A stretch of 64,000 bases of DNA from Macrostomum lignano (taxonomy: Eukaryota): contig NIVC01000004.1 in assembly GCA_002269645.1 (NCBI GenBank), positions 62,001 through 126,000 of the forward strand. Reading direction: 5' to 3'. Position 1 is the stretch's first letter; each line of letters opens with the position of its first letter. Below the pieces are notes generated by a model. The model had not been told where the DNA came from. It saw only the letters and a list, made by a program, of their open reading frames with translations, and did not search any database. Shown here piece by piece: positions 696 to 38,678 of the stretch. The position numbers were made by a program, and so were the translations under genes.

Positions 696-1415
696 TCAGT
701 CGAAGGGCGACACACACTCGCAGAGGCCGAAGCTGGCTGACGTCAGATCCGTCAGGCCGCCACTTCCGGACACGGCGGCGAGCTTGTCCTGTCCGCCGTT
801 GTCATCTGGCTCACCGGAATGCCACAGGCTCGGGTCCACGGTGATGTTGCAGCCGACCCAGTGCCAGCCGCCTGCCGGCTCCGCGCTGCCGGGAGCCTGG
901 AAGCCTCCGAGCCACAAATTGTTACCATCACGAAGCGACTCCACGTGGCTCATCTCTGAGCTGCTCGTCACGTCCGCCATGATCACCAGACCGCTCTCCG
1001 ACTCGCATGTCGATTTTATGACGTCCCACGAGCCGCTGATCACCTTGTACTTGACTCCGCAGAAGTCGTCTCCGTATCCGGACGGACACAGCAGTCCCGC
1101 CGACAGTCCCGGCTGCTGCCTCACGAACACCCGGCCTCGTCTCGAGCAGCCGCAGTCCCTCACAGACTTGCTGCACTTGTTGAACTCGAACAGCTGGCAC
1201 GGACCGTCGGACAGGCTGAAGGCCTGGCACTGCGGCCTCAGGCCACACAGGATGGCGCACTGCTCCTCAGACATCACGCCGTTGAGTGTCCTCACAAACG
1301 GACTGCTGATGCACAGGGAGCCGTTAATGGGCGCAAACTCGGTGCCGCACAGAGCAGCCGCCACAACCGCAGCTGTCAGCCCTAACATAGCGAGATGCAC
1401 AAACACGGGGCGCAT
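696..1415 (-). CDS. Secreted PAN/Apple + C-type lectin domain protein, copy 1 (239 aa, intronless)
   Basis: Hydrophobic leader; PAN core QCAILCGLRPQCQAFSLSDGPCQLF; CTLD motifs CPSGY..YKV, W..IKSTCES, LWLGG, WHW, W..GEPD, LTD, LCEC; ATG to stop intact. Confidence 0.88.
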   Translation of the reverse strand: MRPVFVHLAMLGLTAAVVAAALCGTEFAPINGSLCISSPFVRTLNGVMSEEQCAILCGLRPQCQAFSLSDGPCQLFEFNKCSKSVRDCGCSRRGRVFVRQQPGLSAGLLCPSGYGDDFCGVKYKVISGSWDVIKSTCESESGLVIMADVTSSSEMSHVESLRDGNNLWLGGFQAPGSAEPAGGWHWVGCNITVDPSLWHSGEPDDNGGQDKLAAVSGSGGLTDLTSASFGLCECVSPFD

Positions 1416-1639
1416 GGTGGCAGCTCTCTACTAGCCTGCTCTGAACGGAGCGGAAATCCTGGCTTGGGTTTTCCTGCTTCACCTGTTTTTTTCTCTTGGT
1501 TTTGCGCGGCACAGTTTGTTGTGACAACCGCCTGCATTTTATCATTGGCTGCCGCCGCTGTAATTGCCGATGAGATTCCCGCTGCCGGACAGTCTTCTTT
1601 TCCGCTAGGCTCTACTTCTGAGTAGTGCATAGAGATGTC

Positions 1640-4600
1640 TATGGACTCCTTATGCAATACATTACTAGGCTGAAATGCGAGTACGTTTCGTTGCTAGGAA
1701 TTCATTTGTTTCTACTCAGTGTGAGCTTCTCAAACGCTCAAGTTAGGAAGTTTCCCAGCTGCCGAAACTGATGCAGCATGCCTGCCATCTCACTGGCAGC
1801 TGTGTATCCTACGTGAGCTAAGCACATTCACTCAGCCCCGATGCCAGGATTTCACTTTCAAATGGTTGGGATGGAAACTGCGTGTTAGTGCTTCTGTCAA
1901 TAATTCAGAACGAGGCACCTGGGGTACCGAGTGCAGAAACACTTCTGTTACAAAGCAATCAAAAAGTGATGCGGGCATCAGAACAGCAGGATGGCGCCGT
2001 GCAAAACCTTCAGCTTTGAGTTTTTTGCAGCGAATCAAACCAATTTACTCGTAGTTGCTCAAAAGATAGTGCAGTGACCCGGCTCGGTTCGTGTGCCCAG
2101 CCCAAGTTTCTGATACTATAAGGTGGTACAAACAGGCGTGATGACGCTCTGCCAATGCTACATGAATACTGACAGGCGTGATGACGCTCTGCCAATGCTA
2201 TATGAATACTGACAGGCGTGATGACGCTCTGCCAATGCTACATGAATACTGACAGGCGTGATGACGCTCTGCCAATGCTACATGAATACTGACAGGCGTG
2301 ATGACGCTCTGCCAATGCTACATGAATACTGACAGGCGTGATGACGCTCTGCCAATGCTATATGAATACTGACAGGCGTGATGACGCTCTGCCAATGCTA
2401 CATGAATACTGACAGGCGTGATGACGCTCTGCCAATGCTACATGAATACTGACAGGCGTGATGACGCTCTGCCAATGCTACATGAATACTGACAGGCGTG
2501 ATGACGCTCTGCCAATGCTACATGAATACTGACAGGCGTGATGACGCTCTGCCAATGCTACATGAATACTGACAGGCGTGATGACGCTCTGCCAATGCTA
2601 CATGAATACTGACAGGCGTGATGACGCTCTGCCAATGCTACATGAATACTGACAGGCGTGATGACGCTCTGCCAATGCTACATGAATACTGACAGGCGTG
2701 ATGACGCTCTGCCAATGCTATATGAATACTGACAGGCGTGATGACGCTCTGCCAATGCTACATGAATACTGACAGGCGTGATGACGCTCTGCCAATGCTA
2801 CATGAATACTGACAGGCGTGATGACGCTCTGCCAATGCTATATGAATACTGACAGGCGTGATGACGCTCTGCCAATGCTACATGAATACTGACAGGCGTG
2901 ATGACGCTCTGCCAATGCTATATGAATACTGACAGGCGTGATGACGCTCTGCCAATGCTATATGAATACTGACAGGCGTGATGACGCTCTGCCAATGCTA
3001 CATGAATACTGACAGGCGTGATGACGCTCTGCCAATGCTACATGAATACTGACAGGCGTGATGACGCTCTGCCAATGCTATATGAATACTGACAGGCGTG
3101 ATGACGCTCTGCCAATGCTACATGAATACTGACAGGCGTGATGACGCTCTGCCAATGCTACATGAATACTGACAGGCGTGATGACGCTCTGCCAATGCTA
3201 CATGAATACTGACAGGCGTGATGACGCTCTGCCAATGCTACATGAATACTGACAGGCGTGATGACGCTCTGCCAATGCTACATGAATACTGACAGGCGTG
3301 ATGACGCTCTGCCAATGCTACATGAATACTGACAGGCGTGATGACGCTCTGCCAATGCTACATGAATACTGACAGGCGTGATGACGCTCTGCCAATGCTA
3401 CATGAATACTGACAGGCGTGATGACGCTCTGCCAATGCTACATGAATACTGACAGGCGTGATGACGCTCTGCCAATGCTATATGAATACTGACAGGCGTG
3501 ATGACGCTCTGCCAATGCTACATGAATACTGACAGGCGTGATGACGCTCTGCCAATGCTACATGAATACTGACAGGCGTGATGACGCTCTGCCAATGCTA
3601 CATGAATACTGACAGGCGTGATGACGCTCTGCCAATGCTACATGAATACTGACAGGCGTGATGACGCTCTGCCAATGCTACATGAATACTGACAGGCGTG
3701 ATGACGCTCTGCCAATGCTACATGAATACTGACAGGCGTGATGACGCTCTGCCAATGCTACATGAATACTGACAGGCGTGATGACGCTCTGCCAATGCTA
3801 CATGAATACTGACAGGCGTGATGACGCTCTGCCAATGCTACATGAATACTGACAGGCGTGATGACGCTCTGCCAATGCTACATGAATACTGACAGGCGTG
3901 ATGACGCTCTGCCAATGCTACATGAATACTGACAGGCGTGATGACGCTCTGCCAATGCTACATGAATACTGACAGGCGTGATGACGCTCTGCCAATGCTA
4001 CATGAATACTGACAGGCGTGATGACGCTCTGCCAATGCTACATGAATACTGACAGGCGTGATGACGCTCTGCCAATGCTACATGAATACTGACAGGCGTG
4101 ATGACGCTCTGCCAATGCTACATGAATACTGACAGGCGTGATGACGCTCTGCCAATGCTACATGAATACTGACAGGCGTGATGACGCTCTGCCAATGCTA
4201 CATGAATACTGACAGGCGTGATGACGCTCTGCCAATGCTACATGAATACTGACAGGCGTGATGACGCTCTGCCAATGCTACATGAATACTGACAGGCGTG
4301 ATGACGCTCTGCCAATGCTACATGAATACTGACAGGCGTGATGACGCTCTGCCAATGCTACATGAATACTGACAGGCGTGATGACGCTCTGCCAATGCTA
4401 CATGAATACTGACAGGCGTGATGACGCTCTGCCAATGCTACATGAATACTGACAGGCGTGATGACGCTCTGCCAATGCTACATGAATACTGACAGGCGTG
4501 ATGACGCTCTGCCAATGCTACATGAATACTGACAGGCGTGATGACGCTCTGCCAATGCTACATGAATACTGACAGGCGTGATGACGCTCTGCCAATGCTA

Positions 4601-5000
4601 CATGAATACTGACAGGCGTGATGACGCTCTGCCAATGCTACATGAATACTGACAGGCGTGATGACGCTCTGCCAATGCTATATGAATACTGACAGGCGTG
4701 ATGACGCTCTGCCAATGCAGAGTGTGTTGCGACACTCTCTGGTGCTTATACAGTGGTTCAGTATAAGTAAAAGTATATGATGGTATCCGCTCTCACGGCG
4801 TAATCACGTTCTGGCAAGAAGTTACTGTAGCTTCTTATCTATCCCTGCCTAACAAGCTTCCCGGAAAAGAAGGAATACTCAAAGCAGGCGGCTTACCAGT
4901 GGCTGAGTTACTGAACGCCGCTTACGAGCTATATTTGAGTTCTCAACGTGGCGATAATTTGCCGATACCCGGGCCGGACTCGCTCGCAGGTCTCAGAGCG
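1640..5000 (-). mobile_element. Highly degenerate DIRS/Ngaro-like tyrosine-recombinase relic interrupted by a 40-bp minisatellite
   Basis: Minus-strand frames with stops: SYSNF..ADTIIYFYLY..APESVATHSALAERHH (integrase N-terminal-like) and HVGYTAASEMAG..QFRQLGNF..AFEK (resembles HSFRIGAAT..IRQLGRW.S.AF); recognised by eye only. Confidence 0.4.
2132..4718. repeat. 40-bp minisatellite, about 65 near-identical units (ACAGGCGTGATGACGCTCTGCCAATGCTAYATGAATACTG)
   Basis: Direct tandem periodicity of 40; the only variant seen is C/T in CTA(C/T)ATG. Confidence 0.98.
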
Positions 5001-5678: not shown

Positions 5679-6401
5679 TCAGTTGAATGGCGACTGGCAC
5701 TCGCAGAGGCCGAAGCTGGCCGATGTCAGATCCGTCAGGCCGTCCCTGCCGTTCAGAGCGGCGAGTTTGTCCTGTCCACCTTTGTCATTTGGCTCATTGG
5801 GATGCCACAGGCTGCTGTCTATGGAGATGTTGCAGCTCAGCCAGTGCCAGCCACCGCTGGGTTCGATGCTACCTGGAGCTTGGAAGCCTCCGAGCCACAT
5901 GGGACTTGAGCCTGTGTGCAGTGACCGGATCTGATTCACTTGGGTCAACTCCTCCGTGCTCGTCACGTCCGCCATGATCACCAGACCGCTCTCCGACTCG
6001 CATGTCGATTTTATGACGTCCCACGAGCCGCTGATCACCTTGTACTTGACTCCACAGAAGTCGTCTCCGTATCCGAGCGGACACAGCAGTCCCGCCGGCA
6101 GTCCCGGCTGCTGCCTCACGAACACCCGGCCTCGTCTCGAGCAGCCGCAGTCCCTCACAAACTTGCTGCACTTGTTGAACTCGAACAGCTGGCACGGACC
6201 GTCGGACAGGCTGAAGGCCTGGCACTGCGGCCTCAGGCGGCACAGAATGGCGCACTGCAGCTCCGAAGCGGCTCCAGCAAAGGTTCGGACGAAGTCGCTA
6301 TTGATGCACAGGGAGCCGTCGATCGGAGAGAACTTGGTGCTGCACTGTGAGGCAGCGGCTGCTGCAGCCGCAATCACCCAAATCGCTAGGCGGACCAGCA
6401 T
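5679..6401 (-). CDS. Secreted PAN/Apple + C-type lectin domain protein, copy 2 (240 aa)
   Basis: Paralog of copy 1; signal peptide MLVRLAIWVIAAAAAA; EPN motif; intact ORF. Confidence 0.88.
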   Translation of the reverse strand: MLVRLAIWVIAAAAAAASQCSTKFSPIDGSLCINSDFVRTFAGAASELQCAILCRLRPQCQAFSLSDGPCQLFEFNKCSKFVRDCGCSRRGRVFVRQQPGLPAGLLCPLGYGDDFCGVKYKVISGSWDVIKSTCESESGLVIMADVTSTEELTQVNQIRSLHTGSSPMWLGGFQAPGSIEPSGGWHWLSCNISIDSSLWHPNEPNDKGGQDKLAALNGRDGLTDLTSASFGLCECQSPFN

Positions 6402-6482
6402 CTTGTAGCTGCCTGTCTGCCGCGGTCTGACGAAGACGCCTTCTCATGCGAATCTTCCTTTCTATGCTCGCCAGCTAAATTA

Positions 6483-6496
6483 GTTGCCATAGCAAC
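6483..6496. promoter_or_regulatory. RFX X-box upstream of lectin copy 2
   Basis: GTTGCCATAGCAAC matches GTNRCC-N(0-3)-RGYAAC, 82 bp upstream of the ATG; the same 14-mer lies upstream of copy 5. Confidence 0.6.
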
Positions 6497-6578
6497 AGCG
6501 CCCAACTGCTGCCTTTGTCTGCCACCAATCAGGTTCTGACTGAGTCCTCATTTCAGAAAATCTGTCTCTGGCACAGGT

Positions 6579-7404: not shown

Positions 7405-8515
7405 CTTAACTTAGCTGCGGGGCTGTTCCGGAGGGGACACAGCGAGAAGGCTAATCCCCGAACGGCCGACGCGTCGCTATGGACGAAGGGTTGGCGCCGC
7501 CCAGGGAGGTCCCCCAGTGTCGCCAGCAGCTATAGTGCTCTCTGAAAAAGAGAGTTCAGCCCTGCTGGTGGCCCAGAGGTAGCGCATGAGCTGATTAAAA
7601 GTGTGGCCTGGAGGTAAGTGAGTCTGGCTCGCATGAAGGTAGGACAGATGCTGACGGAATGTTCAGCGGTTTCGTCACCTTAGTTACAAAAGCTGCACAG
7701 GCGTTGGTGGTGTTGCCCTGCAGGTACTGGTGCCTGCAGAAGCAGCCGTGACCCGAGAGGGCAGCCCGGATGTCTCTTCGCGAGAGGCGCAGGAGGAGCT
7801 TCCGGAGCTGGTGAGAGGGCTGAGGGACAGCGCCTCTGGATTGCCTGCAGGTAGTGCAGTTCTCCCAGGCTGAGCAGTGCTGACTCCTGATCCACGCCTT
7901 GATGCGCGAGTCGATGGCACAGCCAGGAATCGGGACAATGGGTTCAGGCCCGAGAGAGGAGCCGGAGGCGCCAACTTTTGCAAGGGTGTCAGCCAGCTCA
8001 TTTCCTCGGATCCCCACATGCCCCGGAACCCACTTAAGGGTGATTTTGTTGGCGGAACCCAACATGTTGAGGAGTTTGATACAGTCGAGGACTGTAGCAG
8101 AGTTGGTACTACAGCCACTGATGGCGTGCAAGGCAGCTTGGCTGTCCGAATGGAAAATGATGTTCTTGCCGGTTTCGCCAGTGGCGAGAAGCTCTGCAGT
8201 GCAAGAGCTGATGGCGAGACCTTCATTTTGGAAGACACTGGAGTTGACCCCAGTATCCTGAGCGTGGTTTGCGATGACCCTCCCGTTCAGGAAGATCCCA
8301 ACACCAAAGCCGGTGTTGACTGACTGCTTTAAACCATCGGTGGTAGCAGTGGAGCTCACCAGGGTTCCAGTGGTCATTGATGGTATCGCGCGGGTCGATA
8401 GCTACGGAGTAGCGTTGTCTCAGATTGAGCGTTGAGGCAATGCCATCGGTGAAGACGCGATTGGCCTGACACTCGTTGAGAATGTTGAGGCACAGGTCAC
8501 ATGGGATGGGAACTG
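7405..8515 (-). mobile_element. 5'-truncated non-LTR retrotransposon 3' end with RNase H (LOA/R1-like), frameshifted
   Basis: ORF 7595-8377: TDG..K..TGFGV, SVFQNE..AI, IIFHSDSQAAL, LKWVPGHVGIRGNELADTLAKVG, then GHGCFCRHQY; short (TTAAG)n-like tail near 7401-7415; frame break near 8340. Confidence 0.85.
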
Positions 8516-8930: not shown

Positions 8931-9695
8931 TCAGTCGAACGGGGATGCGCACTCGCACAGGAACCGGTCGCAGCCTGAGTAGCCTTCCGGCATGTCCGTG
9001 AGATATTTAAAGCCCGAGAATCGACCGAGCCAGTGCTCTTTGCCTCCAGAATCATTCGGTTCGCCAGAGGCCCACAGGCCGGCGTCCACGGTGATGTTGC
9101 AGCCGACCCAGTGCCAGCCGCCTGCCGGCTCCGCGCTGCCGGGTGGCTGGAAGCCTCCGAGCCACATCGAGCTGCCGCTGGCGTAGAGAGACCGCAGCGA
9201 CTCCACGTGGCTCATCTCTGAGCTGCTCGTCACGTCCGCCATGATCACCAGACCGCTCTCCGACTCGCACTTCTGCCGGCTCGTCTCCCACAGTTTGTCA
9301 GCGCTGTTGTAGACCTTGTACCTGACTCCACACAGGTTGTCGCCGTATCCGGGCGGACACAGCAGTCCCGCCGACAGTCCCGGCTGCTGCCTCACGAACA
9401 CTCGGCCTCGTCTCGAGCAGCCGCAGTCCCTCACAGACTTGCTGCACTTGTTGAACTCGAACAACTGGCACGGACCGTCGGACAGGCTGAAGGCCTGGCA
9501 CTGCGGCCTCAGGCGGCACAGAATGGCGCACTGCAGCTCCGAAGCGACTCCAGCGAAGGTGCGGACGAAGTCGCTGTTGATGCACAGGGAGCCGTCGATC
9601 GGAGAGAACTTGGTGCTGCAGACCGGATCCCGAGTTGATTCATCCGCAGCAGCAACTGCCAGAAGAACAGTCAGAGTCAGGAGCACGGACAGCAT
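8931..9695 (-). CDS. Secreted PAN/Apple + C-type lectin domain protein, copy 3 (254 aa)
   Basis: First ATG (MLSVLLTLTVLLAVAAA signal peptide) at 9695; the ORF track starts at an upstream TTG; EPN motif; unique C-terminal loop. Confidence 0.88.
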   Translation of the reverse strand: MLSVLLTLTVLLAVAAADESTRDPVCSTKFSPIDGSLCINSDFVRTFAGVASELQCAILCRLRPQCQAFSLSDGPCQLFEFNKCSKSVRDCGCSRRGRVFVRQQPGLSAGLLCPPGYGDNLCGVRYKVYNSADKLWETSRQKCESESGLVIMADVTSSSEMSHVESLRSLYASGSSMWLGGFQPPGSAEPAGGWHWVGCNITVDAGLWASGEPNDSGGKEHWLGRFSGFKYLTDMPEGYSGCDRFLCECASPFD

Positions 9696-10850: not shown

Positions 10851-10918
10851 TGATCCGGACAGTCAGTTTTAAAACAGATACAGCATGCTCCAGACACCCA
10901 GGTAACAGCAACGTAATA

Positions 10919-15219: not shown

Positions 15220-15331
15220 ATTGGCTCACCACAGGCCGGCGTCCACAGCAATGTTGCAGCCAAACAAGAAGCGACTCCACGTGGCTCATCTCTGAGCTGC
15301 TCGTCACGTCCGCCATGATTACCAGACCGCA
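15220..15331 (-). pseudogene. Collapsed relic of a seventh lectin copy
   Basis: Three colinear pieces of the lectin CDS (GLVIMADVTSSSEMSHVESL; GCNI.VDAGLW; EPN) joined by internal deletions. Confidence 0.85.
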
Positions 15332-16142
15332 CTGTAGAGATTTCCAAACATAGTAGACTACTAGAAATAGTAAGATAAAATTATAAATACAAATTTAAAA
15401 ATAGCAATGCGTCATACTCTATTTTTAGTAATTACCAGTAATATCACGAAAACAGCGAGAGACTATTCTAGCACAAATTGTTCTCAACATCTATTTTCAG
15501 AACTTCCAAATATGGTAAATGTTAATCTGAATGCCACCCAAGTCTCACCCTTTTCTATTCAAAAACCCCACCTGTCAATACCTGACCTTACCTGATCAGT
15601 AGATTTTGAATTCGAGGCCTCCCTATTCCTAAGGGAGTGGATAGGATCTGCGGACCGATTCCGATACTCTTAGAGGATTATTGATTTGATTGATTTTGGC
15701 ACCCTAGAGTAACCGATAGGAGCACACGACTCCGATTCCGTTATTTCTAGAAGAAGACGCCCTTTTCTGGAGGACCTCGTCATTGTTAGAGTTGACTTTG
15801 CTAATACGGCGCATCTCTGATTTCTGCACTCGAGAATACTTTGACGCCGACGGGTTAAATTGTTACGCTCTCATATTCGGCCGATTCTCAGAACACAAGA
15901 AGACAACTCCGGAGGAAGACTACGAGCTCTACAAACCCGCCCGCCCGAGGTCTGGAAGTGGGAGTTCGTGCGTTTAGACACTAGACTTAATTCTCTCTCC
16001 TATTCTCTTTCTCTCTCTCTCTCTCTAGTGTGCTAAAGCGAACTCTTCAGCATGTCGACTTTTTCGGCTGCCTGGCTTCCCTGGGTCTCGACACCAGGAC
16101 ATCCGCGTGAAAGCTATGAGAGGGTTAGGGGGTTAGGTGTTC

Positions 16143-17004
16143 CTCATCAACATCAGCATCACCATCAACAACAACAGCATCATCAACATCAGCAACATCA
16201 GCATCAGCAACATCAGCATCAGCAACATCAGCATCAGCAATATCAGCATCAGCAACATCAGCATCATCAACAATAGCATCATCATCAACAACATCATAAT
16301 CATCATCCACAGCAACATCAACATCAGCATCAGCAACATCAGCATCATCCACAGCAACATCAACATCAGCATCAGCAACATCAGCATCAGCAAAATCAGC
16401 ATCAGCAACATCAGCATCATCAACAACAGCATCATCATCAACAACACCATAATCATCATCCACAGCAACATCAACATCAGCATCAGCAACATCAGCATCA
16501 GCAACATCAGCATCAGCAAAATCAGCATCAGCAACATCAGCATCAGCAACATCAGCATCATCAACAACAGCATCACAATCAACAACAGCACCATCATCAA
16601 CAACAGCATCATCATCAACAACATCATAATCATCATCCACAGCAACATCAACATCAGCATCAGCAACATCAGCATCATCAACATCAGCATCATCAACAGC
16701 AACAGCAACATCAGAATCAGCAACATCAGCATCAGCATCATCAACATCAGCAACATCAGCATCAGCAACATCAGCATCATCAACATCAGCATCATCAACA
16801 TCAACATCAGCAACATCAGCATCAGCATCATCAACATCAGCATCATCAACAGCAACAGCAACATCAGAATCAGCAACATCAGCATCATCAACATCAGCAT
16901 CATCAACAGCAACAGCAACATCAGAATCAGCAACATCAGCATCAGCATCATCAACATCAGCAACATCAGCATCAGCAACATCAGAATCAGCAACATCAAC
17001 ATCA
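16143..17004. repeat. Compound (CAT/CAA/CAG)n trinucleotide microsatellite
   Basis: About 860 bp of ATC/AGC/AAC triplets; explains the long low-complexity ORFs. Confidence 0.97.
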
Positions 17005-17368
17005 AGTGTCAACTTCCATAACGGTTTGAGCTTAGCCTAAACCCAAGGAGTAGGCTGATCACCCTGGCAAATTTAACCAGAAGACAAATACTCATTGATT
17101 TATTGCTTGTCTTTAAATTTCTGCTTTTAATTGCGCTGCTCAAATCGTTTATTGATGCACTTTTCGGGGCCAAGCAGTCACTGGGGAACTCAATTGTCAC
17201 ATGAGAAATTTTAGGTCAGTCTACTTCAACTCGCATTTGATTATTTTCAAGTTGTGCAGGTGCAGCTGAAACGGGTTACTCTGCATTCCTTAGCGGTAGG
17301 ATGCGAACCCAACGCTCTAAAAGTGTTTGCTTACGAGTACTTGCGTTGATCTTCTTCAAAGAGGAATT

Positions 17369-18094
17369 TCAGTTGAATGGCGACTGGCACTCGCAGAGGC
17401 CGAAGCTGGCCGATGTCAGATCCGTCAGGCCGCTCTTTCCCGAGTAGGCAGCGATCTTGTCCTGCCCGCCGTTGTTATCCGGCTCATTAAAGTTCCACAA
17501 ACCGGCGTCCACGGTGATTTTGCAGCCGACCCAGTACCAGCCGCCTGCCGGCTCCGCGCTGCCGGCCGGCTGGAAGCCTCCCAGCCACAAATTGTTGCCA
17601 TCACGAAGCGACTCCACGTGGCTCATCTCTGAGCTGCTCGTCACGTCCGCCATGATCACCAGACCGCTCTCCGACTCGCACTTCTGCCGGCTCGTCTCCC
17701 ACAGTTTGTCGGCGCTGTTGTGGACCTTGTACTTGACTCCACACAGGCCGTCTCCGTATCCGGGCGGACACAGCAGTCCTGCCGGCAGTCCCGGCTGCTG
17801 CCTCACGAACACCCGGCCTCGTCTCGAGCAGCCGCAGTCCCTCACAGACTTGCTGCACTTGTTGAACTCGAACAGCTGGCACGGACCGTCGGACAGGCTG
17901 AAGGCCTGGCACTGCGGCCTCAGGCGGCACAGGAGGGCGCACTGCAGCTCCGAAGCGACTCCAGCGAAGGTTCGGACAAAGTCGCTGTTGATGCACAGGG
18001 AGCCGTCAATCGGAGAGAACTTGGTGCTGCACTGCGAAGCGGCAGCAAGTTTCAAAAGCAACGCAGTCGCTTGCAGTAAAAGCAGCGAGTGCAT
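17369..18094 (-). CDS. Secreted PAN/Apple + C-type lectin domain protein, copy 4 (241 aa)
   Basis: Signal peptide MHSLLLLQATALLLKLAAA; EPD motif; intact ORF. Confidence 0.88.
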   Translation of the reverse strand: MHSLLLLQATALLLKLAAASQCSTKFSPIDGSLCINSDFVRTFAGVASELQCALLCRLRPQCQAFSLSDGPCQLFEFNKCSKSVRDCGCSRRGRVFVRQQPGLPAGLLCPPGYGDGLCGVKYKVHNSADKLWETSRQKCESESGLVIMADVTSSSEMSHVESLRDGNNLWLGGFQPAGSAEPAGGWYWVGCKITVDAGLWNFNEPDNNGGQDKIAAYSGKSGLTDLTSASFGLCECQSPFN

Positions 18095-18612
18095 CGCGAT
18101 GCTGTCTGTCGCTCTCCTGGTGTAAATTCTGCTCTGCCTGAAGCTCTGAGTTCTGAGTCCGTTTGACCTGCTGATTTTTAAATTGCTTCGTGTTGGACTC
18201 TGACTGACTCTGATCTTTTTTGGACTGTGGGCTCTGGGGTTGGTGCTTGGGGTGGGTTATTTGTCTGGTGAGGGTTTGCGTACTCTGTGTACATCGTTGC
18301 TCATTCACTATTCCCTCGTGCATGCCTTATCTCTGTCACCCACCCCAATGCTATGCTGCGATGCTTATTAATGTGTTTTCTGATCTTAGGTTGACTTCAA
18401 TAAACTTTTGTCACAACTGAGAGCTAAAGCTATTGACTTTCACTTCGCATTCGCTCGCGGCTCCTCGGGCAGCATCTTTCCAGCCCAGCTGCCAGAAGCA
18501 GAGGTTCCTGTCCGTGTAAAATGCTGTCGCTTCTGCGCTGCTGCTGCTGCATCAATTCCCGTGCATTGACAAGCATTTCGCTACCCATTAACACGCACGC
18601 GGGATGCGTGCT

Positions 18613-19833
18613 ATTGTCCATAGAAAAAAACATTAGTTTAACGAGTTTTTAGATGACCCAAATATCAATTATTAGATGATTAATTTTTTATTTATACGGT
18701 TTATAATTGTAAATTATAAACAACAACTACTTATAGCATGAAAATGAGGGGGAAATGTCTAAAGCCATAGTTTCTCTCGAAGAATTAGTATTTTTGATAG
18801 ATACGCCCTACTCAAACACAGTGTTAATAAAATTGTTGTTGCCGTCAATGCAAACACGCATATTCTTGGTCGGACGTACAGGCCTCGATATGAACTGGCC
18901 GAGGAACCGGCTCGTCAATTGATTGTGGGGTGGCATTGCAACTGGTGATCCGTCATCACTTGCGTGCAGACAGTAGAACTGATAGAGCCGCTCGCATTAG
19001 CAGAGAAAGACGCCTCATTGGACGGCATTGTGCTTGTGCTTGGAATATGCCGGCTTAGTGCACAGTTCACTGCCTTGGAACTCCTGAACAGACTGCGGTC
19101 CCGGCACCTGGTTAAATACCTTTTGACCGTCTTCTCACATTTCTGACCGGTAATAAGCATTATGTCTTGCAGCGAATGGCCAGCGGCGTCTAGATCGCAC
19201 ACTCTAGTGACTCTGTGGGAGAATCAAAGGAAAGTAATTTTACATGAACTAGTTAAAACTATTATTTATAAATATACTATTTATATACTATTTATATACC
19301 ATATCGGAAAACGAAATTTACTTACCTAATACAGTGATTAGTGTAGACCTTGCTTAGACCGGCCCTCGCACTAAGTTTCTTCATAAATTCTTGAAGGAAT
19401 CGATATCCTCGAGCGGTCTTCTCGGAGAAACGGTACGGTTTTAAAGATTGGCCTTGGAGAGGCTTCGGAAAAAAACGATAGCGAAGCGCAGGGCCTAAAC
19501 GGGTATATTTATTCAAATATACTGGAGGGGGTGTAAGATAAGACAGGGGGTGGGGTGGAGTCCGCAACCGAGGAAAGAGGCGAGAACTGAGAGCCAATCA
19601 GAAGGCAGCGAGGGAGAGAGATAAATGACATAACAAAATTGAACTAGACAGATTCTACTGAGACTGCGTTGTCTTTCTCGATCATAAACAACTAGGCTAT
19701 TTGGAAACACTAGTCAATGCACTTTTCTGCAGTCGGGATGCATGATATTGGATAACACGCTCGCGCCTACCGGTAGACTCGCGTGTGTTACCGATATCAT
19801 GCATCCCGACTGCAGAAGAATATACCATTGTCC
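18613..19833 (-). mobile_element. Crypton-type tyrosine-recombinase element fragment with a spliceosomal intron
   Basis: Joining AG|GTAAG (19325) to CCCACAG| (19213) gives FMKKLSARAGLSKVYTNHCIR-VTRVCDLDAAGHSLQDIMLITGQKCEKTVKRYL; segment absent from the paralogous upstream region of lectin copy 6; ATTGTCC repeated at both ends. Confidence 0.75.
19725..19817. repeat. 93-nt hairpin with perfect 24-bp outer arms
   Basis: TTCTGCAGTCGGGATGCATGATAT ... ATATCATGCATCCCGACTGCAGAA; central palindrome CTACCGGTAG. Confidence 0.9.
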
Positions 19834-20360
19834 GTTGATTTTTCTATAATGCGAGATGCAGCCTTGCATTGACAGACAGGTTCTTTTTTTAGCCAGCAGC
19901 AGTCTTGGCCAATGTTTCCACACAAAAGCAAGTATTTGCTTTCACGAAAATTCTGAGCCTAACTTTTGCATTGAGGTGCAAAGCAAACAAGCAAAGCCAG
20001 GATGCAGTGATGCTAAAAAGCATTGGCTAACACCTGTCTGTCTCATCTGCTGAGCAAAGATAGATCAGGATGAGCTGACTGTGCTGTCACCATTCAGTCA
20101 TTATTCAGTAGTTCTCACCGATTTACAGGCCCGTTAGTGTGGGATGTGGGCAGATCAAGGTGGGTGATGCAGACTGGTGAAATCTGACTGGCTGCAGTGA
20201 CGGCAAAGGCAAAAGGGCGCTTCGCTGGCACATTGGGTTCATCGGAGGCTGGTTTTCGTTGCAAACTTCATTGTCCAGTGAGAGCGCGTATTCTTTTTTT
20301 CACAAGCTGATCTATACAAGTTTGAAAAGGTATTGTTGAAGACCTGGAAATCGCGAAATG

Positions 20361-20952: not shown

Positions 20953-22684
20953 TCCGAGTACAGGTTGTGTTCTCTAGAGGGATTTTGCACCGATTTCAGA
21001 TTTCGTCAGATCAGCCTGTGCTGCTCGTCTCCGTTCCCTCCAGCTGGTGAGGCCGTCACCTGCGGCGGCGGCTTGCGACTGTCACTGGATGTGGCCATCC
21101 TGCACGAACCAAGATGAACCGATTCCGCCAGCAAGTCCTGTAGCGACTTCGGCACGCGCCGCAGCCGCCCACCTCCTAACCTTCAAGAGCAGCGGTGGCT
21201 TGAAGCTTCTCACTGCCGCTCTCTTCTGCCGTCTGTTTCGGCTGGTCGTCAGCCGTGCTGGCCTGGCCGACGGGTCTGCCTCTGTCGCTACAAATCGTTC
21301 GCCGCGGGGCGCCTCGCGCTGGCGTTCCGTGCCGGCGTGCCGCTGACGGTCGTCAAGGCCCTGGGCGACTGACGGAGCTCGGCGGTCGAGACGCACCTGG
21401 GGCTGGAGAAAGGTCTCAAACTGGGAACTGGAGGTAGCCAGCAGCTGCGCGCAAACTGTCGCCATGCGAAAAGTCCAGGTTCTCAGTGAAAGCGTTTTTA
21501 GTCTACTGTGCTTTCTTTCTCTTTCTTTGATGTGGCCCCTTTTTCACGCTTACATTTTCACAGCCGTCTTCTCGTCTTCTTTATGCTGTTTCAGCTCGGA
21601 CTATGCTACCAGTATGCGAAAAGTCCCATTTTCCCAGTGATGTGTTCCTTACTACCAAGACCTTCTTTGTAATCAAGGAACAGTCACTTCTAGCTTACTG
21701 TTAGGCAACCCAGTAATCAAATGAAGGTATTTATTACCTTGAGTCCTGATCAGTTGTGCTCTTCCTGTGCGTTGTTCTCGAAATAGGATATCCTCTGGTG
21801 GGTCAGTTGATCCGGCGCCTTACTTCTTAGAATCTGGTCCAAGTCCTTTGTACTCCTTGGCTTTCTTGCCGGCCGGTGCGGTATCTGTAGTTCGGACCAA
21901 TAGAAGTTTCGAATTAATGCACTCTAGGTATAGCTCCGGTAATCACTGATAGTCTTCTGATGGCTATCAGGGTAGTCCTTCTGGAGACTACAACCAATGG
22001 AGTCTCAAATAGACTCAGTCACAACAATAATATCGAGTCGACTCTAACACCTGGCGCAAATGAGTGAGGCTCACCACAAGAACTCAGCCGAGTCTCGGTT
22101 GACTTGGTCTGAAGGAAGTTCCTCGCCGACTTCCTCTTCTTCCCTCTGGAAGGTTCTCTTTTTACATGGCTATTTTGCGTTATAAATAGTAAGGCGATTC
22201 GTTGTTCGTTATACATAGTAACATGTTTCATAGTTTCCGTTGAAATAGTAACTTGACTCACGGTTTAAGTTCTGCTGCGCATGTTTGCATTAGTCTACTT
22301 ACAGTAGGACTCTATGAATAAACTTCTACATGAACAATTTTGTGATTTTTTGTGGGACGTAGAACACTCTACACCAGTTAAAGCTTTTACTCTTCTGTGC
22401 TTTCTCTCTCTTTCTCTGATGTGGTTTTTTACGCTTACCTTTTCACAGCCTTTTCGCCTTGTTTTCTTTATGCTGCTCCTCTAGCTTGGACTATGCTCCG
22501 AGTATACGAGCTCACCTTAAAGCCAAGGAGTAGGCTGCGCACTCGGACAAAATTAATCCAAAAACAATGACTCATTGGTTTATTGCTTGCCAAGATTAAA
22601 TATTGTTCGACTGATAAGCATCAGATTTTTCTCAAGCCAAAGCCGCCATGCTGGGGGCTCCCAAAGCCAGTCTGCGATGCGTAC

Positions 22685-23419
22685 TCAGTCGAAGGGCGAC
22701 ACACACTCGCAGAGGCCGAAGCTGGCCGACGTCAGATCCGTCAGGCCGCCACTTCCGGACACGGCGGCGAGCTTGTCCTGCCCGCCTTTGTCATTTGGCT
22801 CACCGGAATGCCACAAATCGGCGTCCACGGTGATGTTGCAGCCGACCCAGTACCAGCCGCCATCAGGCTCCGCGCTGCCGGGTGGCTGTAGGCCTCCCAG
22901 CCACAGAGAGTTGCCATCACGAAGCGACTCCACGTGGCTCATCTCTGAGCTGCTCGTCACGTCCGCCATGATCACAAGACCGCTCTCCGACTCGCACTTC
23001 TGTCGGCTCGTCTCCCACAGTTTGTCAGCGCTGTCGTAGACCTTGTACTTGACTCCACAGAAGTCATCTCCGTATCCGGGCGGACACAGCAGTCCCGCCG
23101 GCAGTCCCGGCTGCTGCCTCACGAACACCCGGCCTCGTCTCGAGCAGCCGCAGTCCCTCACAGACTTGCTGCACTTGTTGAACTCGAACAGCTGGCACGG
23201 ACCGTCGGACAGGCTGAAGGCCTGGCACTGCGGCCTCAGGCGGCACAGGAGGGCGCACTGCAGCTCCGAAGCGACTCCAGCGAAGGTTCGGACAAAGTCG
23301 CTGTTGATGCACAGGGAGCCGTCGATGGGAGAGAACTTGGTGCTGCACTGCGAGGCCTCATCCGCTGCTATTGAAGTTGCCAGACCTGCAGCCAGGCACA
23401 GCAACAGCAGGGAACTCAT
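22685..23419 (-). CDS. Secreted PAN/Apple + C-type lectin domain protein, copy 5 (244 aa)
   Basis: Signal peptide MSSLLLLCLAAGLATSIAA; EPN motif; intact ORF. Confidence 0.88.
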   Translation of the reverse strand: MSSLLLLCLAAGLATSIAADEASQCSTKFSPIDGSLCINSDFVRTFAGVASELQCALLCRLRPQCQAFSLSDGPCQLFEFNKCSKSVRDCGCSRRGRVFVRQQPGLPAGLLCPPGYGDDFCGVKYKVYDSADKLWETSRQKCESESGLVIMADVTSSSEMSHVESLRDGNSLWLGGLQPPGSAEPDGGWYWVGCNITVDADLWHSGEPNDKGGQDKLAAVSGSGGLTDLTSASFGLCECVSPFD

Positions 23420-23530
23420 GGCAGAGCAGAGGCTGGCTGTCTGCTTCCCTGACTGTTTTGGCCGAAGAGCGCTTTGTTTCCTTCCTTTATCCCTAACAGG
23501 GTTCTCCTTTCCAGCTGCTGTTGTTTCCTA

Positions 23531-23544
23531 GTTGCCATAGCAAC
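23531..23544. promoter_or_regulatory. RFX X-box upstream of lectin copy 5
   Basis: GTTGCCATAGCAAC, 112 bp upstream of the ATG. Confidence 0.6.
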
Positions 23545-24450: not shown

Positions 24451-24753
24451 GCCTCGTACGGCTTGTAGCCAAGTGGTTTCGAGCGTCGGACTCACGACTT
24501 GAAGGTGGGGGGTTCGATTCCCGGTCCCACTGGAACAATTTGTGTCCTTGATCAAGACACTTAACTCTGCATTGCTTCAGTTCACCCAGCTGTAAAGTGG
24601 GCACCAGCATTAGCTGAGGTAATTGAGGGTGTGTGTGGCGACCCCCCAGTCCTTGGACTGAACAGCCGTACGCAGCCTTCAGATGCGCTGCGCAATGGCT
24701 GCGGCTGAGCTGTCGTTGCACATCTACTGCCCATTGGGGGCATGTGTAATCAA
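24451..24753 (+). mobile_element. tRNA-derived SINE
   Basis: Pol III A box TAGCCAAGTGG (24466) and B box GGTTCGATTCC (24511); body GTGTCCTTGATCAAGACACTTAAC..TCAGTTCACCCAGCTGTAAA; imperfect 11-bp TSD TTATA(A/T)TGTAA at 24440 and 24754; second copy at 38.9 kb. Confidence 0.85.
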
Positions 24754-25330
24754 TTATATTGTAAACTGTGCGTACGAATTATTTATGATGCATTCACGCA
24801 TGGAGTGCTTCTCTGTAGTGTGTCTTCACCCACCAGCTGAGTCCGCTCAGTTTGATTGGGTAAACTGCTGTGTCAGCAGAGACTCCTGCCAAGGGCGGAG
24901 GTTTTAGAAAGTTTTCCTGCACTGCTGTCAGGCGTGCGGGCTGTCAAAAACTCTTGAACTCAGACATCAAATCGTAGGCTGCCTTAACATCTGAAGTCAA
25001 ATTAATCAGTAACCGCTTTGAGTAGTATGAAAAGCAAATTCTCAAGAAAGAATTTAACATAAAAAACTAGTTTGCAGATTTGCAAAAATGTCTGCTTTTG
25101 ATTTCGCTGCTCAAATAGTTTATGAATGCGTTTTTCGGGGCCAAGCAGTCACTGGGGCACCCAGTTGTCACATGGGGAATTTTATTCTGTCTACTTCAAC
25201 TCGCATCGGCTTTTTTCAAGTTGTGCAGCTGCATCTGAAAATTTTACTGCGCGTTTCTCAGCAGCAGGATGAGAGCCAAACGTTCTTAAAACTTTTGCTT
25301 ACTTGCGTTGATCTTCTTCAAAGAGGAATT

Positions 25331-26059
25331 TCAGTTGAATGGCGACGCGCACTCGCAGAGGCCGAAGCTGGCCGATGTCAGATCCGTAAGGCCGTCCCTG
25401 CCGTTCATAGCGGCGAGTTTGTCCTGTCCACCTTTGTCATTTGGCTCATTGGGATGCCACAGGCTGCTGTCCATGGAGATGTTGCAGCTCAGCCAGTGCC
25501 AGCCACCGCTGGGTTCGATGCTACCTGGAGCTTGGAAGCCTCCGAGCCACATGGGACTTGAGCCTGTGTGCAGTGACCGGATCTGATTCACTTGGGCCAA
25601 CTCCTCCGTGCTCGTCACGTCCGCCATGATCACCAGACCGCTCTCCGACTCGCATGTCGATTTTATGTCGTCCCACGAGCCGCTGACCACCTTGTACTTG
25701 ACTCCACACAAGTCGTCTCCGTATCCGGGCGGACACAGCAGTCCCGCCGGCAGTCCCGGCTGCTGCCTCACGAACACCCGGCCTCGTCTCGAGCAGCCGC
25801 AGTCCCTCACAGACTTGCTGCACTTGTTGAACTCGAACAGCTGGCACGGACCGTCGGACAGGCTGAAGGCCTGGCACTGCGGCCTCAGGCGGCACAGAAT
25901 GGCGCACTGCAGCTCCGAAGCGGCTCCAGCAAAGGTTCGGACGAAGTCGCTATTGATGCACAGGGAGCCGTCAATCGGAGAGAACTTGGTGCTGCACTGC
26001 GAAGCGGCAGCAAGTTTCAAAAACAACGCAGTCGCTTGCAGCAAAAGCAGCGAGTGCAT
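25331..26059 (-). CDS. Secreted PAN/Apple + C-type lectin domain protein, copy 6 (242 aa)
   Basis: Leader nearly identical to copy 4, CTLD nearly identical to copy 2; EPN motif; intact ORF. Confidence 0.88.
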   Translation of the reverse strand: MHSLLLLQATALFLKLAAASQCSTKFSPIDGSLCINSDFVRTFAGAASELQCAILCRLRPQCQAFSLSDGPCQLFEFNKCSKSVRDCGCSRRGRVFVRQQPGLPAGLLCPPGYGDDLCGVKYKVVSGSWDDIKSTCESESGLVIMADVTSTEELAQVNQIRSLHTGSSPMWLGGFQAPGSIEPSGGWHWLSCNISMDSSLWHPNEPNDKGGQDKLAAMNGRDGLTDLTSASFGLCECASPFN

Positions 26060-36180: not shown

Positions 36181-36200
36181 TCTAGAATCAAATTTGACTC

Positions 36201-38623: not shown

Positions 38624-38628
<5 letters not shown>

Positions 38629-38673: not shown

Positions 38674-38678
<5 letters not shown>

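Follow-up and report, generated by a model that had tools for sequence, protein, structure and literature searches.

Within the window, the 64 kb stretch of Macrostomum lignano DNA analysed here, a row of related genes combines stretches that are almost invariant from copy to copy with stretches that exist in a few discrete versions. How did this mosaic arise, and does it serve the recognition of ligands, as the original prediction proposed?

Layout of the array and predicted fold of its proteins

As predicted, six intact single-ORF paralogs (239-254 aa), all on the minus strand, were found within 696-26059 (Table 1). The first ATG was taken as the start of g3, the mechanical ORF of which begins at a TTG further upstream. 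Searches of the whole 64 kb with blastn and tblastn revealed no seventh full copy, only a single relic fragment. In this relic, about 64-69 nt of ANCH2 and the start of V2a (…GLVIMADVTSSSEMSHVESL) are joined to 33 nt of the mid block (GCNIAVDAGLW), with identities to the live copies of 95-97% and 82-91%; it has no start codon and its frame is broken. The unit around g6 is common to the g4 region at 17115-18194, 18477-18566 and 19826-20265, with 83-92% identity in its flank parts; overall, the flanks of the copies reach 83-92% at best or are unalignable. Transposon fragments, an ionotropic glutamate receptor, an LRR protein and a tubulin-like ORF are the neighbours in the window, and 695 nt separate g1 from the edge of the window. 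No exact product of the array genes was found in the assembly index.

Table 1 Positions of the paralogs, their blocks and related features in the window
Feature	Position	Strand	Size	Blocks or partner	Basis
g1, PAN-CTLD paralog	696-1415	-	239 aa	SP 1350-1415; PANa 1254-1349; ANCH1 1044-1253; V1 1008-1043; ANCH2 963-1007; V2 915-962; mid 825-914; loop 750-824; C-term 699-749	ORF
g2, PAN-CTLD paralog	5679-6401	-	240 aa	ANCH1 6039-6248; V1 6003-6038; ANCH2 5958-6002; V2 5898-5957; loop 5733-5807	ORF
g3, PAN-CTLD paralog	8931-9695	-	254 aa (from first ATG)	ANCH1 9315-9524; V1 9270-9314; ANCH2 9225-9269; V2 9165-9224; loop 8997-9074	ORF
g4, PAN-CTLD paralog	17369-18094	-	241 aa	ANCH1 17726-17935; V1 17681-17725; ANCH2 17636-17680; V2 17588-17635; loop 17423-17497	ORF
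g5, PAN-CTLD paralog	22685-23419	-	244 aa	ANCH1 23042-23251; V1 22997-23041; ANCH2 22952-22996; V2 22904-22951; loop 22739-22813	ORF
g6, PAN-CTLD paralog	25331-26059	-	242 aa	ANCH1 25691-25900; V1 25655-25690; ANCH2 25610-25654; V2 25550-25609; loop 25385-25459	ORF
Pseudogene relic	15229-15333	-	105 nt		blastn + tblastn
Old segmental duplication unit around g6	25086-26707	-		partner: g4 region	
3' flank of g1	316-695	-		partly common to g5 (22503-22684) and g4 (17006-17109), 79-95% identity	

Each paralog is predicted to consist of a signal peptide, a PAN/Apple-like module, a Cys-rich linker and a C-type lectin-like domain (CTLD). The family profile matched codakine, a C-type lectin (2vuv, E = 8e-5), and the PAN domain of Eimeria MIC5 (1hky, E = 0.0015). 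In Pfam, neither Lectin_C nor PAN_4 reached its curated threshold. An AlphaFold model of the g5 copy has a pLDDT of 70-88 across the CTLD part, and Foldseek aligned it with the carbohydrate-recognition domains (CRDs) of langerin, CEL-I and CD23 (E ~2.5e-6, target-normalised TM 0.65-0.73). The CTLD of the array has the same fold as the canonical Ca-dependent CRDs (codakine, langerin, CEL-I, CD23) and shares with them the WLGG (WIGL-type) motif, the WxW core, the N-terminal long-form hairpin CPxGY...C and, in g2, g3, g5 and g6, EPN as the specificity tripeptide of the loop block. Besides the sub-threshold Lectin_C score, it differs from them in its incomplete set of Ca/sugar motifs (LTD in place of WND, Gln or Lys in place of Glu after EPN), in carrying EPD in g1 and g4, in its cysteine pattern (the C in VGCN, CEC at the end), and in its fusion to the N-terminal PAN/Apple-like module and Cys-rich linker. 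In the codakine alignment and the AlphaFold model, V1 falls on helix alpha1 and the loop preceding it, and V2 on helix alpha2 and the loop following it; the region of the long-loop sugar/Ca site holds only the 631-708 block, which carries EPN or EPD.

Many PAN-CTLD paralogs are present in M. lignano, forming a large lineage-specific expansion. At the protein level a second array, fused in the gene model A0A1I8H3Z5, is likewise a mosaic of blocks, with most of its variation at alpha2 and the long loop. The present array thus appears to be part of a larger lineage-specific family with the same behaviour, and judging from their sequences its products would be secreted glycan- or protein-binding lectins.

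Invariant anchors and discrete block versions

The copies had been predicted to share anchors that are nearly invariant even at synonymous sites, and the codon alignment agrees with this. The RPQCQ...QQPGL stretch deviates from the consensus by 0-2 nt per copy, CESESGLVIMADVTS shows a single nucleotide difference across the copies (in g5), and GLTDLTSASFGLCEC occurs, as anticipated, in five of the six copies, with g3 as the exception. ANCH1 extends over 210 nt with near-zero synonymous change. Mean pS was 0.03-0.07 in the anchors versus 0.39-0.60 in the other blocks, and third codon positions were polymorphic at 9 of 85 anchor sites versus 80 of 132 elsewhere (Fisher p=3.6e-14). In a monomorphic-run test, which is independent of the block boundaries originally proposed, the longest monomorphic third-position run spanned 37 codons, whereas in 20,000 permutations the longest run was 9 codons on average and 25 at most (p<5e-5), and 65 runs were observed against 106 ± 7 expected. 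Between g4 and g6, the anchors are 97.6-100% identical, while the common flanks, used as a neutral yardstick, reach 83-92%. GC3 rose only a little, from 0.67-0.72 in V2 and the loop to 0.83-0.92 in the anchors, so that the signature of GC-biased conversion is weak.

The remaining blocks exist in 2-4 versions each, which are assembled into five distinct block combinations in the six genes. The predicted groupings were recovered in the alignment, with V1 separating g1, g2 and g6 from g3, g4 and g5, and V2 separating g1, g4 and g5 from g2 and g6; the type frequencies are 3:3 for V1, 3:2:1 for V2 and 2:2:1:1 for the loop. The V2 of g3, originally taken for a hybrid, is indeed intermediate in form, but a recombinant origin is not required: because the more distant paralogs all have the long V2 form, g3 may simply have retained the ancestral-length version. 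The ancestral-length C-terminus (GCDRFLCEC) is retained in g3 as well, and the loop and C-terminal blocks of this copy are unique to it. Version types differ from one another by a pS of 0.45-0.7, whereas copies sharing one version differ by 0-5 nt. By the crude measure of pN/pS, which was 0.35-0.7 in the variable blocks and below 1 in every block, there is no evidence of positive selection.

Exchange between the copies and its explanation

The expectation that the versions assort differently from block to block, so that no single tree fits, was upheld by the PHI test (p<0.0002 for all three window sizes; incompatibility in 34% of the pairs of informative sites) and by a Hudson-Kaplan Rm of 22, with 18 in the mature region; part of these intervals, chiefly those of the loop block, may reflect recurrent mutation at saturated sites instead of exchange. 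The nearest neighbour of each gene changes from block to block, at a distance of 0-5 nt. In g1, V1 is closest to g2, V2 to g4, the mid block to g3, and the loop and C-terminal blocks to g5, with which the match continues through the first 56 nt of the 3' flank; no other copy shares the signal peptide or the first PAN half of g1. Similarly, g4 shares its leader and signal peptide with g6, V1 with g3, V2 with g1, and the C-terminal block with g2 (0 differences). In g6, a g4-like leader and signal peptide with g4-like flanks enclose a body that is 97.7% identical to g2 from about codon 15 to 3 nt beyond the stop codon, the flanks of g2 and g6 being unrelated or unalignable.

Conversion tracts, on which the original prediction had been staked in advance, were significant in seven gene pairs of this one genome sequence, each with 0/5000 site-order permutations: g1-g2 376-481, g1-g4 436-530, g1-g5 664-719, g2-g4 699-771, g3-g4 406-509, g4-g6 41-128 and g4-g5 109-335. 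Over alignment nt 376-481 g1 equals g2, over 436-530 g1 equals g4 bar one difference, and over 699-771 g2 equals g4. Together with the block-wise neighbour switches, these tracts bear out that the mosaic comes from exchange between paralogs. The further suggestion that the anchors act as crossover sites stands only in part. Whole variable blocks were moved, with junctions in or beside anchors, but 9 of the 18 minimal recombination intervals of the mature region lie inside the variable loop block (636-720), and the mapping of junctions to anchors is partly tautological because junctions can be located only between informative sites.

The duplications are old, since synonymous sites of the signal peptides have reached saturation and the flanks are diverged to the extent given above. 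Recurrent short-tract interlocus gene conversion in this old tandem array is very probably the best explanation, and we infer conversion, rather than double crossover, as the likely mechanism. Following the duplications, patches of about 70-700 nt would have been swapped repeatedly by interlocus (ectopic) gene conversion or unequal exchange. Blocks conserved at the protein level would be similar enough to start and resolve heteroduplex and would become homogenised in all copies as anchors, whereas the strongly diverged blocks that differ by indels (V1, V2, mid, loop and C-terminus) would not blend, so that a few discrete old versions would stay. A tract spanning a diverged block would then move a version whole from copy to copy, giving the observed block combinations. 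Donor copies may also lie outside the window, in a genome with large duplicated blocks.

Could the anchors instead be invariant for the sake of their nucleotide sequence, because it folds into an RNA structure, serves as a target site for regulation or small RNAs, or holds an antisense gene that overlaps the array gene? The length of ANCH1 almost without synonymous change would suit such a function, as would the long plus-strand antisense ORFs over every copy (e.g. 688-1434, 248 aa). These ORFs, however, are due to codon bias and are predicted by the GC3 of 0.78, with equally long antisense open stretches appearing in 10-55% of synonymous-codon resampling trials for the frame concerned. The RNA fold of ANCH1 has z=-0.14, no Rfam family reached its gathering score in 1-30 kb, and the pS of the anchors to an outgroup contig (L001) is 0.61-0.63, not below that of the other blocks (~0.6). 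Nor can a fixed constraint on anchors explain variable blocks that are near-identical in particular copy pairs. This reading is therefore largely refuted and extremely unlikely, and since the anchors show no deep nucleotide constraint, gene conversion is the explanation we favour. An assembly artefact is very unlikely too, whether through uncollapsed haplotypes, chimeric joins of paralogs or polishing by mis-mapped reads that overwrite minority variants in conserved stretches. Assemblies of M. lignano do contain much repetitive and redundant sequence, with 15% of the genome in tandem and simple repeats and 180 Mb in blocks duplicated at 95% identity or more (PMC5730564), and a few true anchor differences could be erased by polishing. 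But the copies are not haplotypes, because they differ from one another in their flanks, in their spacing (2-8 kb) and in the transposon or satellite sequence that separates them; the window has zero Ns, all six frames are intact, and polishing cannot yield 30-60% divergence in variable blocks or block-wise neighbour switching. The UniProt gene model A0A1I8HTM9, which matches g6 exactly and possibly comes from the same assembly, has the same g4-like leader joined to the g2-like body over 263 residues. Least credible of all is a programmed or somatic system that copies cassettes into an expressed gene during life, in the manner of pilin, VSG or vlsE sites, chicken pseudo-V conversion or lamprey VLR assembly. 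Discrete cassettes between short invariant anchors recall such systems, as does the small promoterless relic with its anchor and cassette start. Yet each of the six copies is a complete gene that has a start codon and signal peptide of its own and a distinct upstream region, the window contains this single decayed relic instead of a bank of silent partial cassettes and no recombinase- or deaminase-like gene, and ectopic conversion in the course of evolution, whether in meiosis or mitosis, fully explains the germline pattern.

The original prediction also added a functional layer, in which selection keeps several versions of each ligand-contacting block and conversion via the anchors reshuffles the specificities of secreted immune or mucus lectins. 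This layer is only partly supported, and we regard an adaptive repertoire as doubtful. The versions are old and yet near-identical where shared, so conversion has been frequent but has eliminated no type; the type frequencies are balanced, EPN and EPD alternate at the specificity tripeptide, the sister array varies at comparable places, and the family has expanded greatly in this lineage. Flatworm C-type lectins expressed in mucus glands and epidermis, one of them induced by bacteria (review PMC7958881), offer an analogy in the same direction. Against this stand the pN/pS values, the incomplete Ca-site motifs, and the modest diversity per block. Of the exchanged segments, only the loop block lies in the region of the sugar/Ca site; V1 and V2 lie on helices away from the canonical sugar site. 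Nor is selection needed to keep old versions: their persistence is also to be expected where heterology and indels impede conversion or where donor copies sit beyond the window.

Comparison with known systems

The array, with at least six paralogs that look expressed from their sequences, is a clean case of gene conversion among tandemly arranged family members, a process already known, and not a new type of system. Primate red/green opsins, RHD/RHCE, MHC and KIR genes are textbook cases of interlocus gene conversion in tandem duplicates. As in these cases, paralog identity in conserved stretches of the array far exceeds that of the flanks, nearest relatives switch sharply, tracts are short, and diverged stretches are kept as discrete types. 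Unlike them, the array belongs to an uncharacterised flatworm PAN-CTLD family, and its division into blocks is unusually clear: there are six copies, five or more blocks that switch, and versions defined by indels.

Gene conversion, recombination and mispairing have been proposed to diversify the Sp185/333 (SpTransformer) genes, a clustered immune family of the purple sea urchin (PMC1988830, PMC5103432). Both families consist of small, tightly linked genes that are mosaics of blocks (called elements in Sp185/333), and both have repeats between genes, although the minisatellites of the array occur throughout the window and are not placed specifically at gene borders. The proteins are unrelated, and Sp185/333 genes differ by presence or absence of elements, whereas the array has alternative block versions. 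Sp185/333 comprises about 50 genes with a repertoire unshared between individuals and strong immune induction; the array, as seen in the window, has six genes.

Closer in host, C-type lectin-like genes of free-living flatworms include a Girardia tigrina family in mucus glands and at the body edge and Dugesia japonica Dj-CTL, induced by bacteria (both as described in the review PMC7958881). Like the predicted products of the array, these are secreted CTLD proteins; the passages of the review on them do not mention a PAN module or tandem mosaic, both of which the array has. As an analogy for a possible role of the array at the surface, in mucus or in immunity, these lectins are plausible.

Organization of the array and its block mosaic

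The six PAN-CTLD paralogs, g1 to g6, encode products of 239-254 aa that are 72-79% identical to g1, and neighbouring genes of the array are spaced 2-8 kb apart. When the whole 64 kb was searched with one copy by blastn and tblastn, no seventh full gene was found. A 105-nt relic, which is without a start codon and has a broken frame, represents a decayed seventh family member, indicating that copies in the array also die. Further minisatellites are also present between the six genes. Since g1 is only 695 nt from the window edge, the array may extend leftward, and its right end lies before the gene of an ionotropic glutamate receptor.

The reading frame of this receptor is uninterrupted, whereas the published genome average is about five introns per gene. 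The tubulin-like ORF farther to the right is perhaps a copy that has diverged or is decaying. Minisatellites (periods of 12-48 bp) are very dense at 35792-52923 and 62069-63338, among them a 19-bp unit repeated over 3.5 kb (43613-47103) and an 18-bp unit repeated over 2.5 kb (48273-50743). Both regions show an extreme strand composition skew, with AT skew down to -0.8, and many long "ORFs" in them are repeat artefacts. The tandem repeat downstream of g4 likewise accounts for three spurious ORFs of ~290 aa that overlap one another and lie on both strands (16125-17021).

Features of the array and its neighbourhood (window positions) and blocks of the codon alignment of the six genes (alignment nt)
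Feature	Position	Strand	Description
g1	696-1415	-	intact ORF
Satellite between g1 and g2	2132-4718		2.6 kb, 64.7 copies of the 40-bp unit ACAGGCGTGATGACGCTCTGCCAATGCTACATGAATACTG, 99% identity
g2	5679-6401	-	intact ORF
RNase H-containing ORF	7595-8377	-	transposon remnant between lectin genes, Pfam E=9e-8
g3	8931-9695	-	intact ORF, from first ATG
DDE_3 transposase-like ORF	11452-12204	+	transposon remnant between lectin genes, E=1e-6
Relic, 105 nt	15229-15333	-	ANCH2/V2a start (V2a, the short V2 version) fused to a mid-block piece; blastn/tblastn
Tandem repeat	16144-17004		imperfect 15/21-nt repeat TCATCAACATCAGCA, ~365 nt downstream of the g4 stop
g4	17369-18094	-	intact ORF
g5	22685-23419	-	intact ORF
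g6	25331-26059	-	intact ORF; true start codon, ATG at 26059
Ionotropic glutamate receptor	30756-33857	-	complete; ANF_receptor, Lig_chan-Glu_bd, Lig_chan; one 1033-codon ORF
Leucine-rich-repeat protein	52946-56221	-	LRRNT module, single ORF, 1091 aa
Tubulin-like ORF	57167-58462	-	431 aa, partial tubulin domains
Signal peptide block			g4=g6; other copies unrelated
ANCH1	alignment nt 181-390		ILCRLRPQCQ... to ...GVKYKV; near-invariant in 6/6
V1	alignment nt 391-435		{g1,g2,g6} vs {g3,g4,g5}; 9-nt indel
ANCH2	alignment nt 436-480		CESESGLVIMADVTS; near-invariant in 6/6
V2	alignment nt 481-540		{g1,g4,g5} vs {g2,g6}, g3 intermediate; 12-nt indel
Mid block	alignment nt 541-630		{g2,g6} vs rest
Loop block	alignment nt 631-708		{g1,g5}, {g2,g6}, g3, g4
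C-terminal block			{g1,g5}, {g2,g4,g6}, g3

The codon alignment shows exactly the pattern that the original prediction had described, namely six intact same-strand paralogs with discrete block versions. Its further claim that certain blocks (the anchors, ANCH1 and ANCH2) are near-invariant even at synonymous sites is borne out by mean synonymous difference proportions (pS) of 0.069 in ANCH1 and 0.034 in ANCH2, with 0.31-0.60 in the other blocks. The versions form five combinations among the six genes. Gene g1, for example, is identical to g2 in V1, 1 nt from g4 in V2, 5 nt from g3 in the mid block, and 3 nt and 1 nt from g5 in the loop and C-terminal blocks, respectively, and its first PAN half is 28-33 of 96 nt apart from every other copy.

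Third codon positions are polymorphic at 9 of 85 sites in the anchors and 80 of 132 elsewhere (Fisher p=3.6e-14). Given that the anchors had been defined by their invariance, a test free of block boundaries was added. The longest monomorphic run of third positions spans 37 codons (permutation mean 9, maximum 25 in 20,000), and the sequence of polymorphic and monomorphic third positions contains 65 runs, where 106+-7 are expected. The versions also assort differently by block so that no single tree fits, as had been predicted: block distance matrices disagree, and the PHI statistic is far under its permutation distribution at three window sizes (p<0.0002). The compatibility test was failed by 34% of informative site pairs, and the Hudson-Kaplan minimum recombination count (Rm) is 22, with 18 in the mature region. 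A GENECONV-style pairwise test with 5000 site-order permutations, a check proposed together with the prediction, revealed significant shared tracts in seven pairs, each reached in 0 of 5000 permutations (g1-g2, alignment nt 376-481; g1-g4, 436-530; g1-g5, 664-719; g2-g4, 699-771; g3-g4, 406-509; g4-g6, 41-128; g4-g5, 109-335). The mosaic is confirmed and statistically strong.

Probable gene conversion versus constraint and artefact

As a neutral yardstick, we used the non-coding DNA that was duplicated along with the genes. The shared flanks of g4 and g6 are 83-92% identical and the shared 3' flank of g1 and g5 87-95%, whereas the anchors are 97.6-100% identical. By this yardstick, the anchors are far younger than the duplications, and saturation at synonymous sites is seen in the signal peptides (pS 0.60). 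Between about codon 15 and a point 3 nt past the stop, the coding bodies of g2 and g6 share 97.7% identity, and the flanks of these two genes are unalignable; together with the flanks shared by g4 and g6, this indicates that g6 combines g4-type flanks and leader with a g2-type body. GC content at third codon positions (GC3) ranges from 0.83 to 0.92 in the anchors, against 0.67-0.72 in V2 and the loop block and 0.80-0.84 in the other variable blocks, so that any signature of GC-biased conversion would be weak.

It is unlikely that the anchors are invariant because their nucleotide sequence is itself functional. Compared with the outgroup L001 (a Logan contig with a distant relative, 47% protein identity), their synonymous divergence is 0.61-0.63, as elsewhere in the gene, a saturated value that excludes strong constraint only. 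Moreover, ANCH1 RNA folds no better than shuffled sequences (z=-0.14), and there were no Rfam matches in 1-30 kb of the window. The possibility raised along with the prediction that the copies are uncollapsed haplotypes is excluded, since each copy has its own unique flanks and spacing. Polishing of the assembly could at most have stripped a few real differences from the anchors, and it is unable to create block-wise switching. Retrogene origin, suggested by similarity limited to the coding sequence, is not favoured, because g4/g6 and g1/g5 are old segmental duplicates with non-coding flanks in common; the neighbouring non-family genes are likewise single ORFs. On the plus strand, ORFs of 150-248 aa run antisense over each gene; they are equally long after synonymous-codon resampling, and their length is explained by a GC3 of 0.78.

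The most likely mechanism is ordinary interlocus gene conversion, very cleanly displayed, and the array is no evidence for a new mechanism of diversification. In this process, short-tract ectopic conversion would recur among old duplicates, and the shared tracts observed are ~70-230 nt long, plus one of ~680 nt. Purifying selection at the protein level would keep some stretches similar (the PAN core, the Cys-rich linker, beta0-beta1, beta2 and the WLGG/WxW core), which would offer the homology for tracts to start and end and be covered by most events, so that all copies would end up identical there. Where divergence had already reached 30-60% and indels were present, sequences would not be blended; they would be skipped or copied whole, and the variable blocks would therefore exist as a few discrete, re-assorting versions. 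Comparison with more distant paralogs identified the long forms of V2 and of the C-terminus, both seen in g3, as ancestral, and the derived versions are the V2a deletion, which has spread to three copies, and the TSASFG----LCEC deletion, which has spread to five. The proposed role of the anchors as crossover sites fits these data; the mapping is partly circular, since junctions can be placed only between informative sites, and 9 of the 18 minimal recombination intervals counted for the mature region fall within the loop block. These nine intervals represent either micro-tracts or recurrent mutation.

Predicted fold of the products and their relatives

Each protein opens with a hydrophobic, signal-peptide-like segment, which is followed by a PAN/Apple-like module, a Cys-rich linker and a long-form C-type lectin-like domain (CTLD). 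Single-sequence Pfam scores are low, with best scores of 15-17 bits for Lectin_C (PF00059; gathering cut-off 22.6, only g5 and g6 listed) and 13-16 bits for PAN_4 (cut-off 27). The family profile, by comparison, matches codakine, a C-type lectin of bivalves (2vuv, E=8e-5, residues 109-229), and, over the CQAF...CQLF core, the Eimeria MIC5 PAN domain (1hky, E=0.0015). AlphaFold with an alignment of 26 sequences gave a pLDDT of 70-88 for the C-terminal CTLD (36 with only 9 sequences), and Foldseek of the CTLD model retrieved the carbohydrate-recognition domains (CRDs) of langerin, CEL-I and CD23 (E ~2.5e-6, target TM 0.65-0.73). The CTLD fold, with two helices, two sheets and a long loop region, is thus predicted for the array proteins. 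The putative PAN part, for which a Cys-framed core (C..AF....C.LF) is typical, has a pLDDT of 60-70 and remains below the PAN_4 threshold; UniProt annotates one sister paralog as "Apple domain-containing" and paralogs as "C-type lectin domain-containing". ANCH1 (23042-23251 in g5), the most nucleotide-invariant part of the gene, encodes the Cys-rich linker CSKSVRDCGCSRRGRVFVRQQPGL, and this linker, the core of the anchor, has a pLDDT <50. A furin-like RRGR site in ANCH1 was also considered; the motif is not kept in more distant paralogs.

Within the loop block, g2, g3, g5 and g6 carry the tripeptide EPN, and g1 (750-824) and g4 (17423-17497) carry EPD. At Ca site 2, the usual Glu after this tripeptide is replaced by Gln (Lys-Glu in g3), and WND is LTD in all six copies, so that the complete set (EPN or QPD, the downstream Glu and WND) does not occur in g1-g6. 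Predicted sugar binding is uncertain given this incomplete motif set, and Ca-dependent binding is possible, not assured.

An exhaustive profile search returned 1366 proteins at E<=1e-3, nine of them at E<=1e-30. Eleven of the best thirteen matches, which include those nine, were checked and proved to be nine M. lignano gene models and two Logan contigs. Short Logan contigs of distant relatives were obtained in two cases (L001 and L002). Since the best matches are chiefly M. lignano gene models, the PAN-CTLD family appears to be a lineage-specific expansion. Exact or near-exact products of g1-g5 were not found in the protein collections searched, and exact-product look-ups for g4, g5, g6, P0001 and P0002 found nothing. 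The best database relative, P0001 (UniRef100_A0A1I8HTM9, M. lignano), corresponds exactly to g6 in its last 221 residues, and its first 42 residues are an exact translation of the g6 5' leader/signal-peptide region in another frame (25331-26200). The two frames are joined over a 28-nt GT...AG stretch, which is consistent with a spurious predicted intron, and judged from the genomic sequence, this public model is wrong at the 5' end of g6. Another M. lignano model, P0008 (UniRef100_A0A1I8H3Z5, 3072 aa), comprises at least three and a half fused tandem PAN-CTLD genes with junk between them. Its copies form a sister subfamily and are also a block mosaic, in which copy c4 clusters with c3 for the PAN part and with c1 for alpha2 and the beta-strand motifs; at the protein level, the patchwork variation is found mostly in the long loop and alpha2. 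Given this second array, mosaic behaviour seems to be general for the family. The M. lignano papers retrieved contain no description of the family and deal with an unrelated gut gene and with adhesion proteins (Mlig-ap1).

Proposed recognition repertoire and comparison with known systems

The original prediction interpreted the array as an adaptive "combinatorial recognition repertoire", which is possible but unsupported, and we consider it unlikely. Its wider form, in which the array and the rest of the M. lignano PAN-CTLD family are a selection-maintained repertoire shuffling germline cassettes, with individuals differing in combinations or copy number and with surface or microbe-induced expression, seems quite improbable. 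In its favour, shared versions are nearly identical, yet the types are very old and at balanced frequencies, so that frequent conversion has made no such block uniform. Heterology barriers or donors outside the window could give the same picture of balanced versions, however, and a repertoire of five combinations in six genes is small. The ratio of nonsynonymous to synonymous difference proportions, pN/pS, by which the proposed dN/dS was computed for every block (Nei-Gojobori), is 0.35-0.7 in the variable blocks and <1 in all blocks; it neither shows nor excludes diversifying selection, because the blocks are short, comparisons between types are saturated and recombination invalidates tree tests.

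The variable blocks had also been taken as ligand-binding segments. According to the codakine alignment and the AlphaFold model, V1 runs from the end of beta1 over the next loop into helix alpha1 (helix at model residues 114-123), and V2 comprises helix alpha2 and the loop before beta3 (helix at model residues 136-145). In known CTLDs, alpha1 and alpha2 lie beside the sheet, on the side opposite the Ca/sugar site, and dimer interfaces frequently involve alpha2. V1 and V2 are not canonical ligand loops, and in the model the 631-708 block alone lies in the long-loop region of sugar specificity, where the copies differ (EPN vs EPD). According to a review, planarian C-type lectins are found in mucus glands and epidermis, and one is induced by bacteria (PMC7958881). 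For a surface, mucus or immune role of the array proteins, the flatworm literature offers analogies only.

If ordinary gene conversion is the true reading, the array would be an unusually clean natural example of two opposite outcomes of conversion within one 730-nt gene, with some blocks fully homogenised and old, indel-marked versions moved in others. It would lend itself to work on tract length, on heterology barriers and on how concerted evolution is balanced against retained diversity. The array also points to an expanded PAN-CTLD family, presumably of secreted proteins and so far uncharacterised, in a flatworm amenable to genetics; the family is a candidate for glycan recognition at surfaces or in mucus, immunity or reproduction. 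Were a selection-maintained repertoire true, the family would be to flatworms what Sp185/333 is to sea urchins or FREPs are to snails; M. lignano permits direct tests by transgenesis and RNAi.

With true Ca-dependent C-type lectin CRDs, the array shares the fold and, in four copies, the EPN motif, but it lacks the full Ca site 2 set. Programmed cassette-donor systems (pilE/pilS, VSG, vlsE, chicken pseudo-V, VLR) do not fit, because g1-g6 are all complete genes that possess an ATG, a signal peptide and an upstream region of their own; such systems need one or a few expression sites and a silent bank of partial cassettes, whereas there are six complete genes and one decayed relic here. Among invertebrate defence families, Sp185/333 is the closest named analogue, and both consist of small, clustered, block-mosaic genes. 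Sp185/333 genes are mosaics of "elements" with short flanking repeats, for which conversion, recombination and mispairing have been proposed, and their hallmarks are immune induction and the lack of a repertoire common between individuals (PMC1988830, PMC5103432). The proteins, however, are unrelated, and variation in Sp185/333 lies in whether elements are present or absent. The likeness concerns the layout of the genes in one M. lignano genome sequence. Unlike the short repeats flanking Sp185/333 genes, the minisatellites of the window are abundant throughout and not specifically at gene borders, consistent with the 15% of tandem and simple repeats in the M. lignano genome (PMC5730564). The array agrees with families shaped by interlocus gene conversion, since its paralogs are more identical in the anchors than in co-duplicated flanks and at other synonymous sites and show phylogenetic incongruence with discrete shared tracts. 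Block-wise concerted evolution by interlocus gene conversion is a well-known process, and the array is mechanistically the same.
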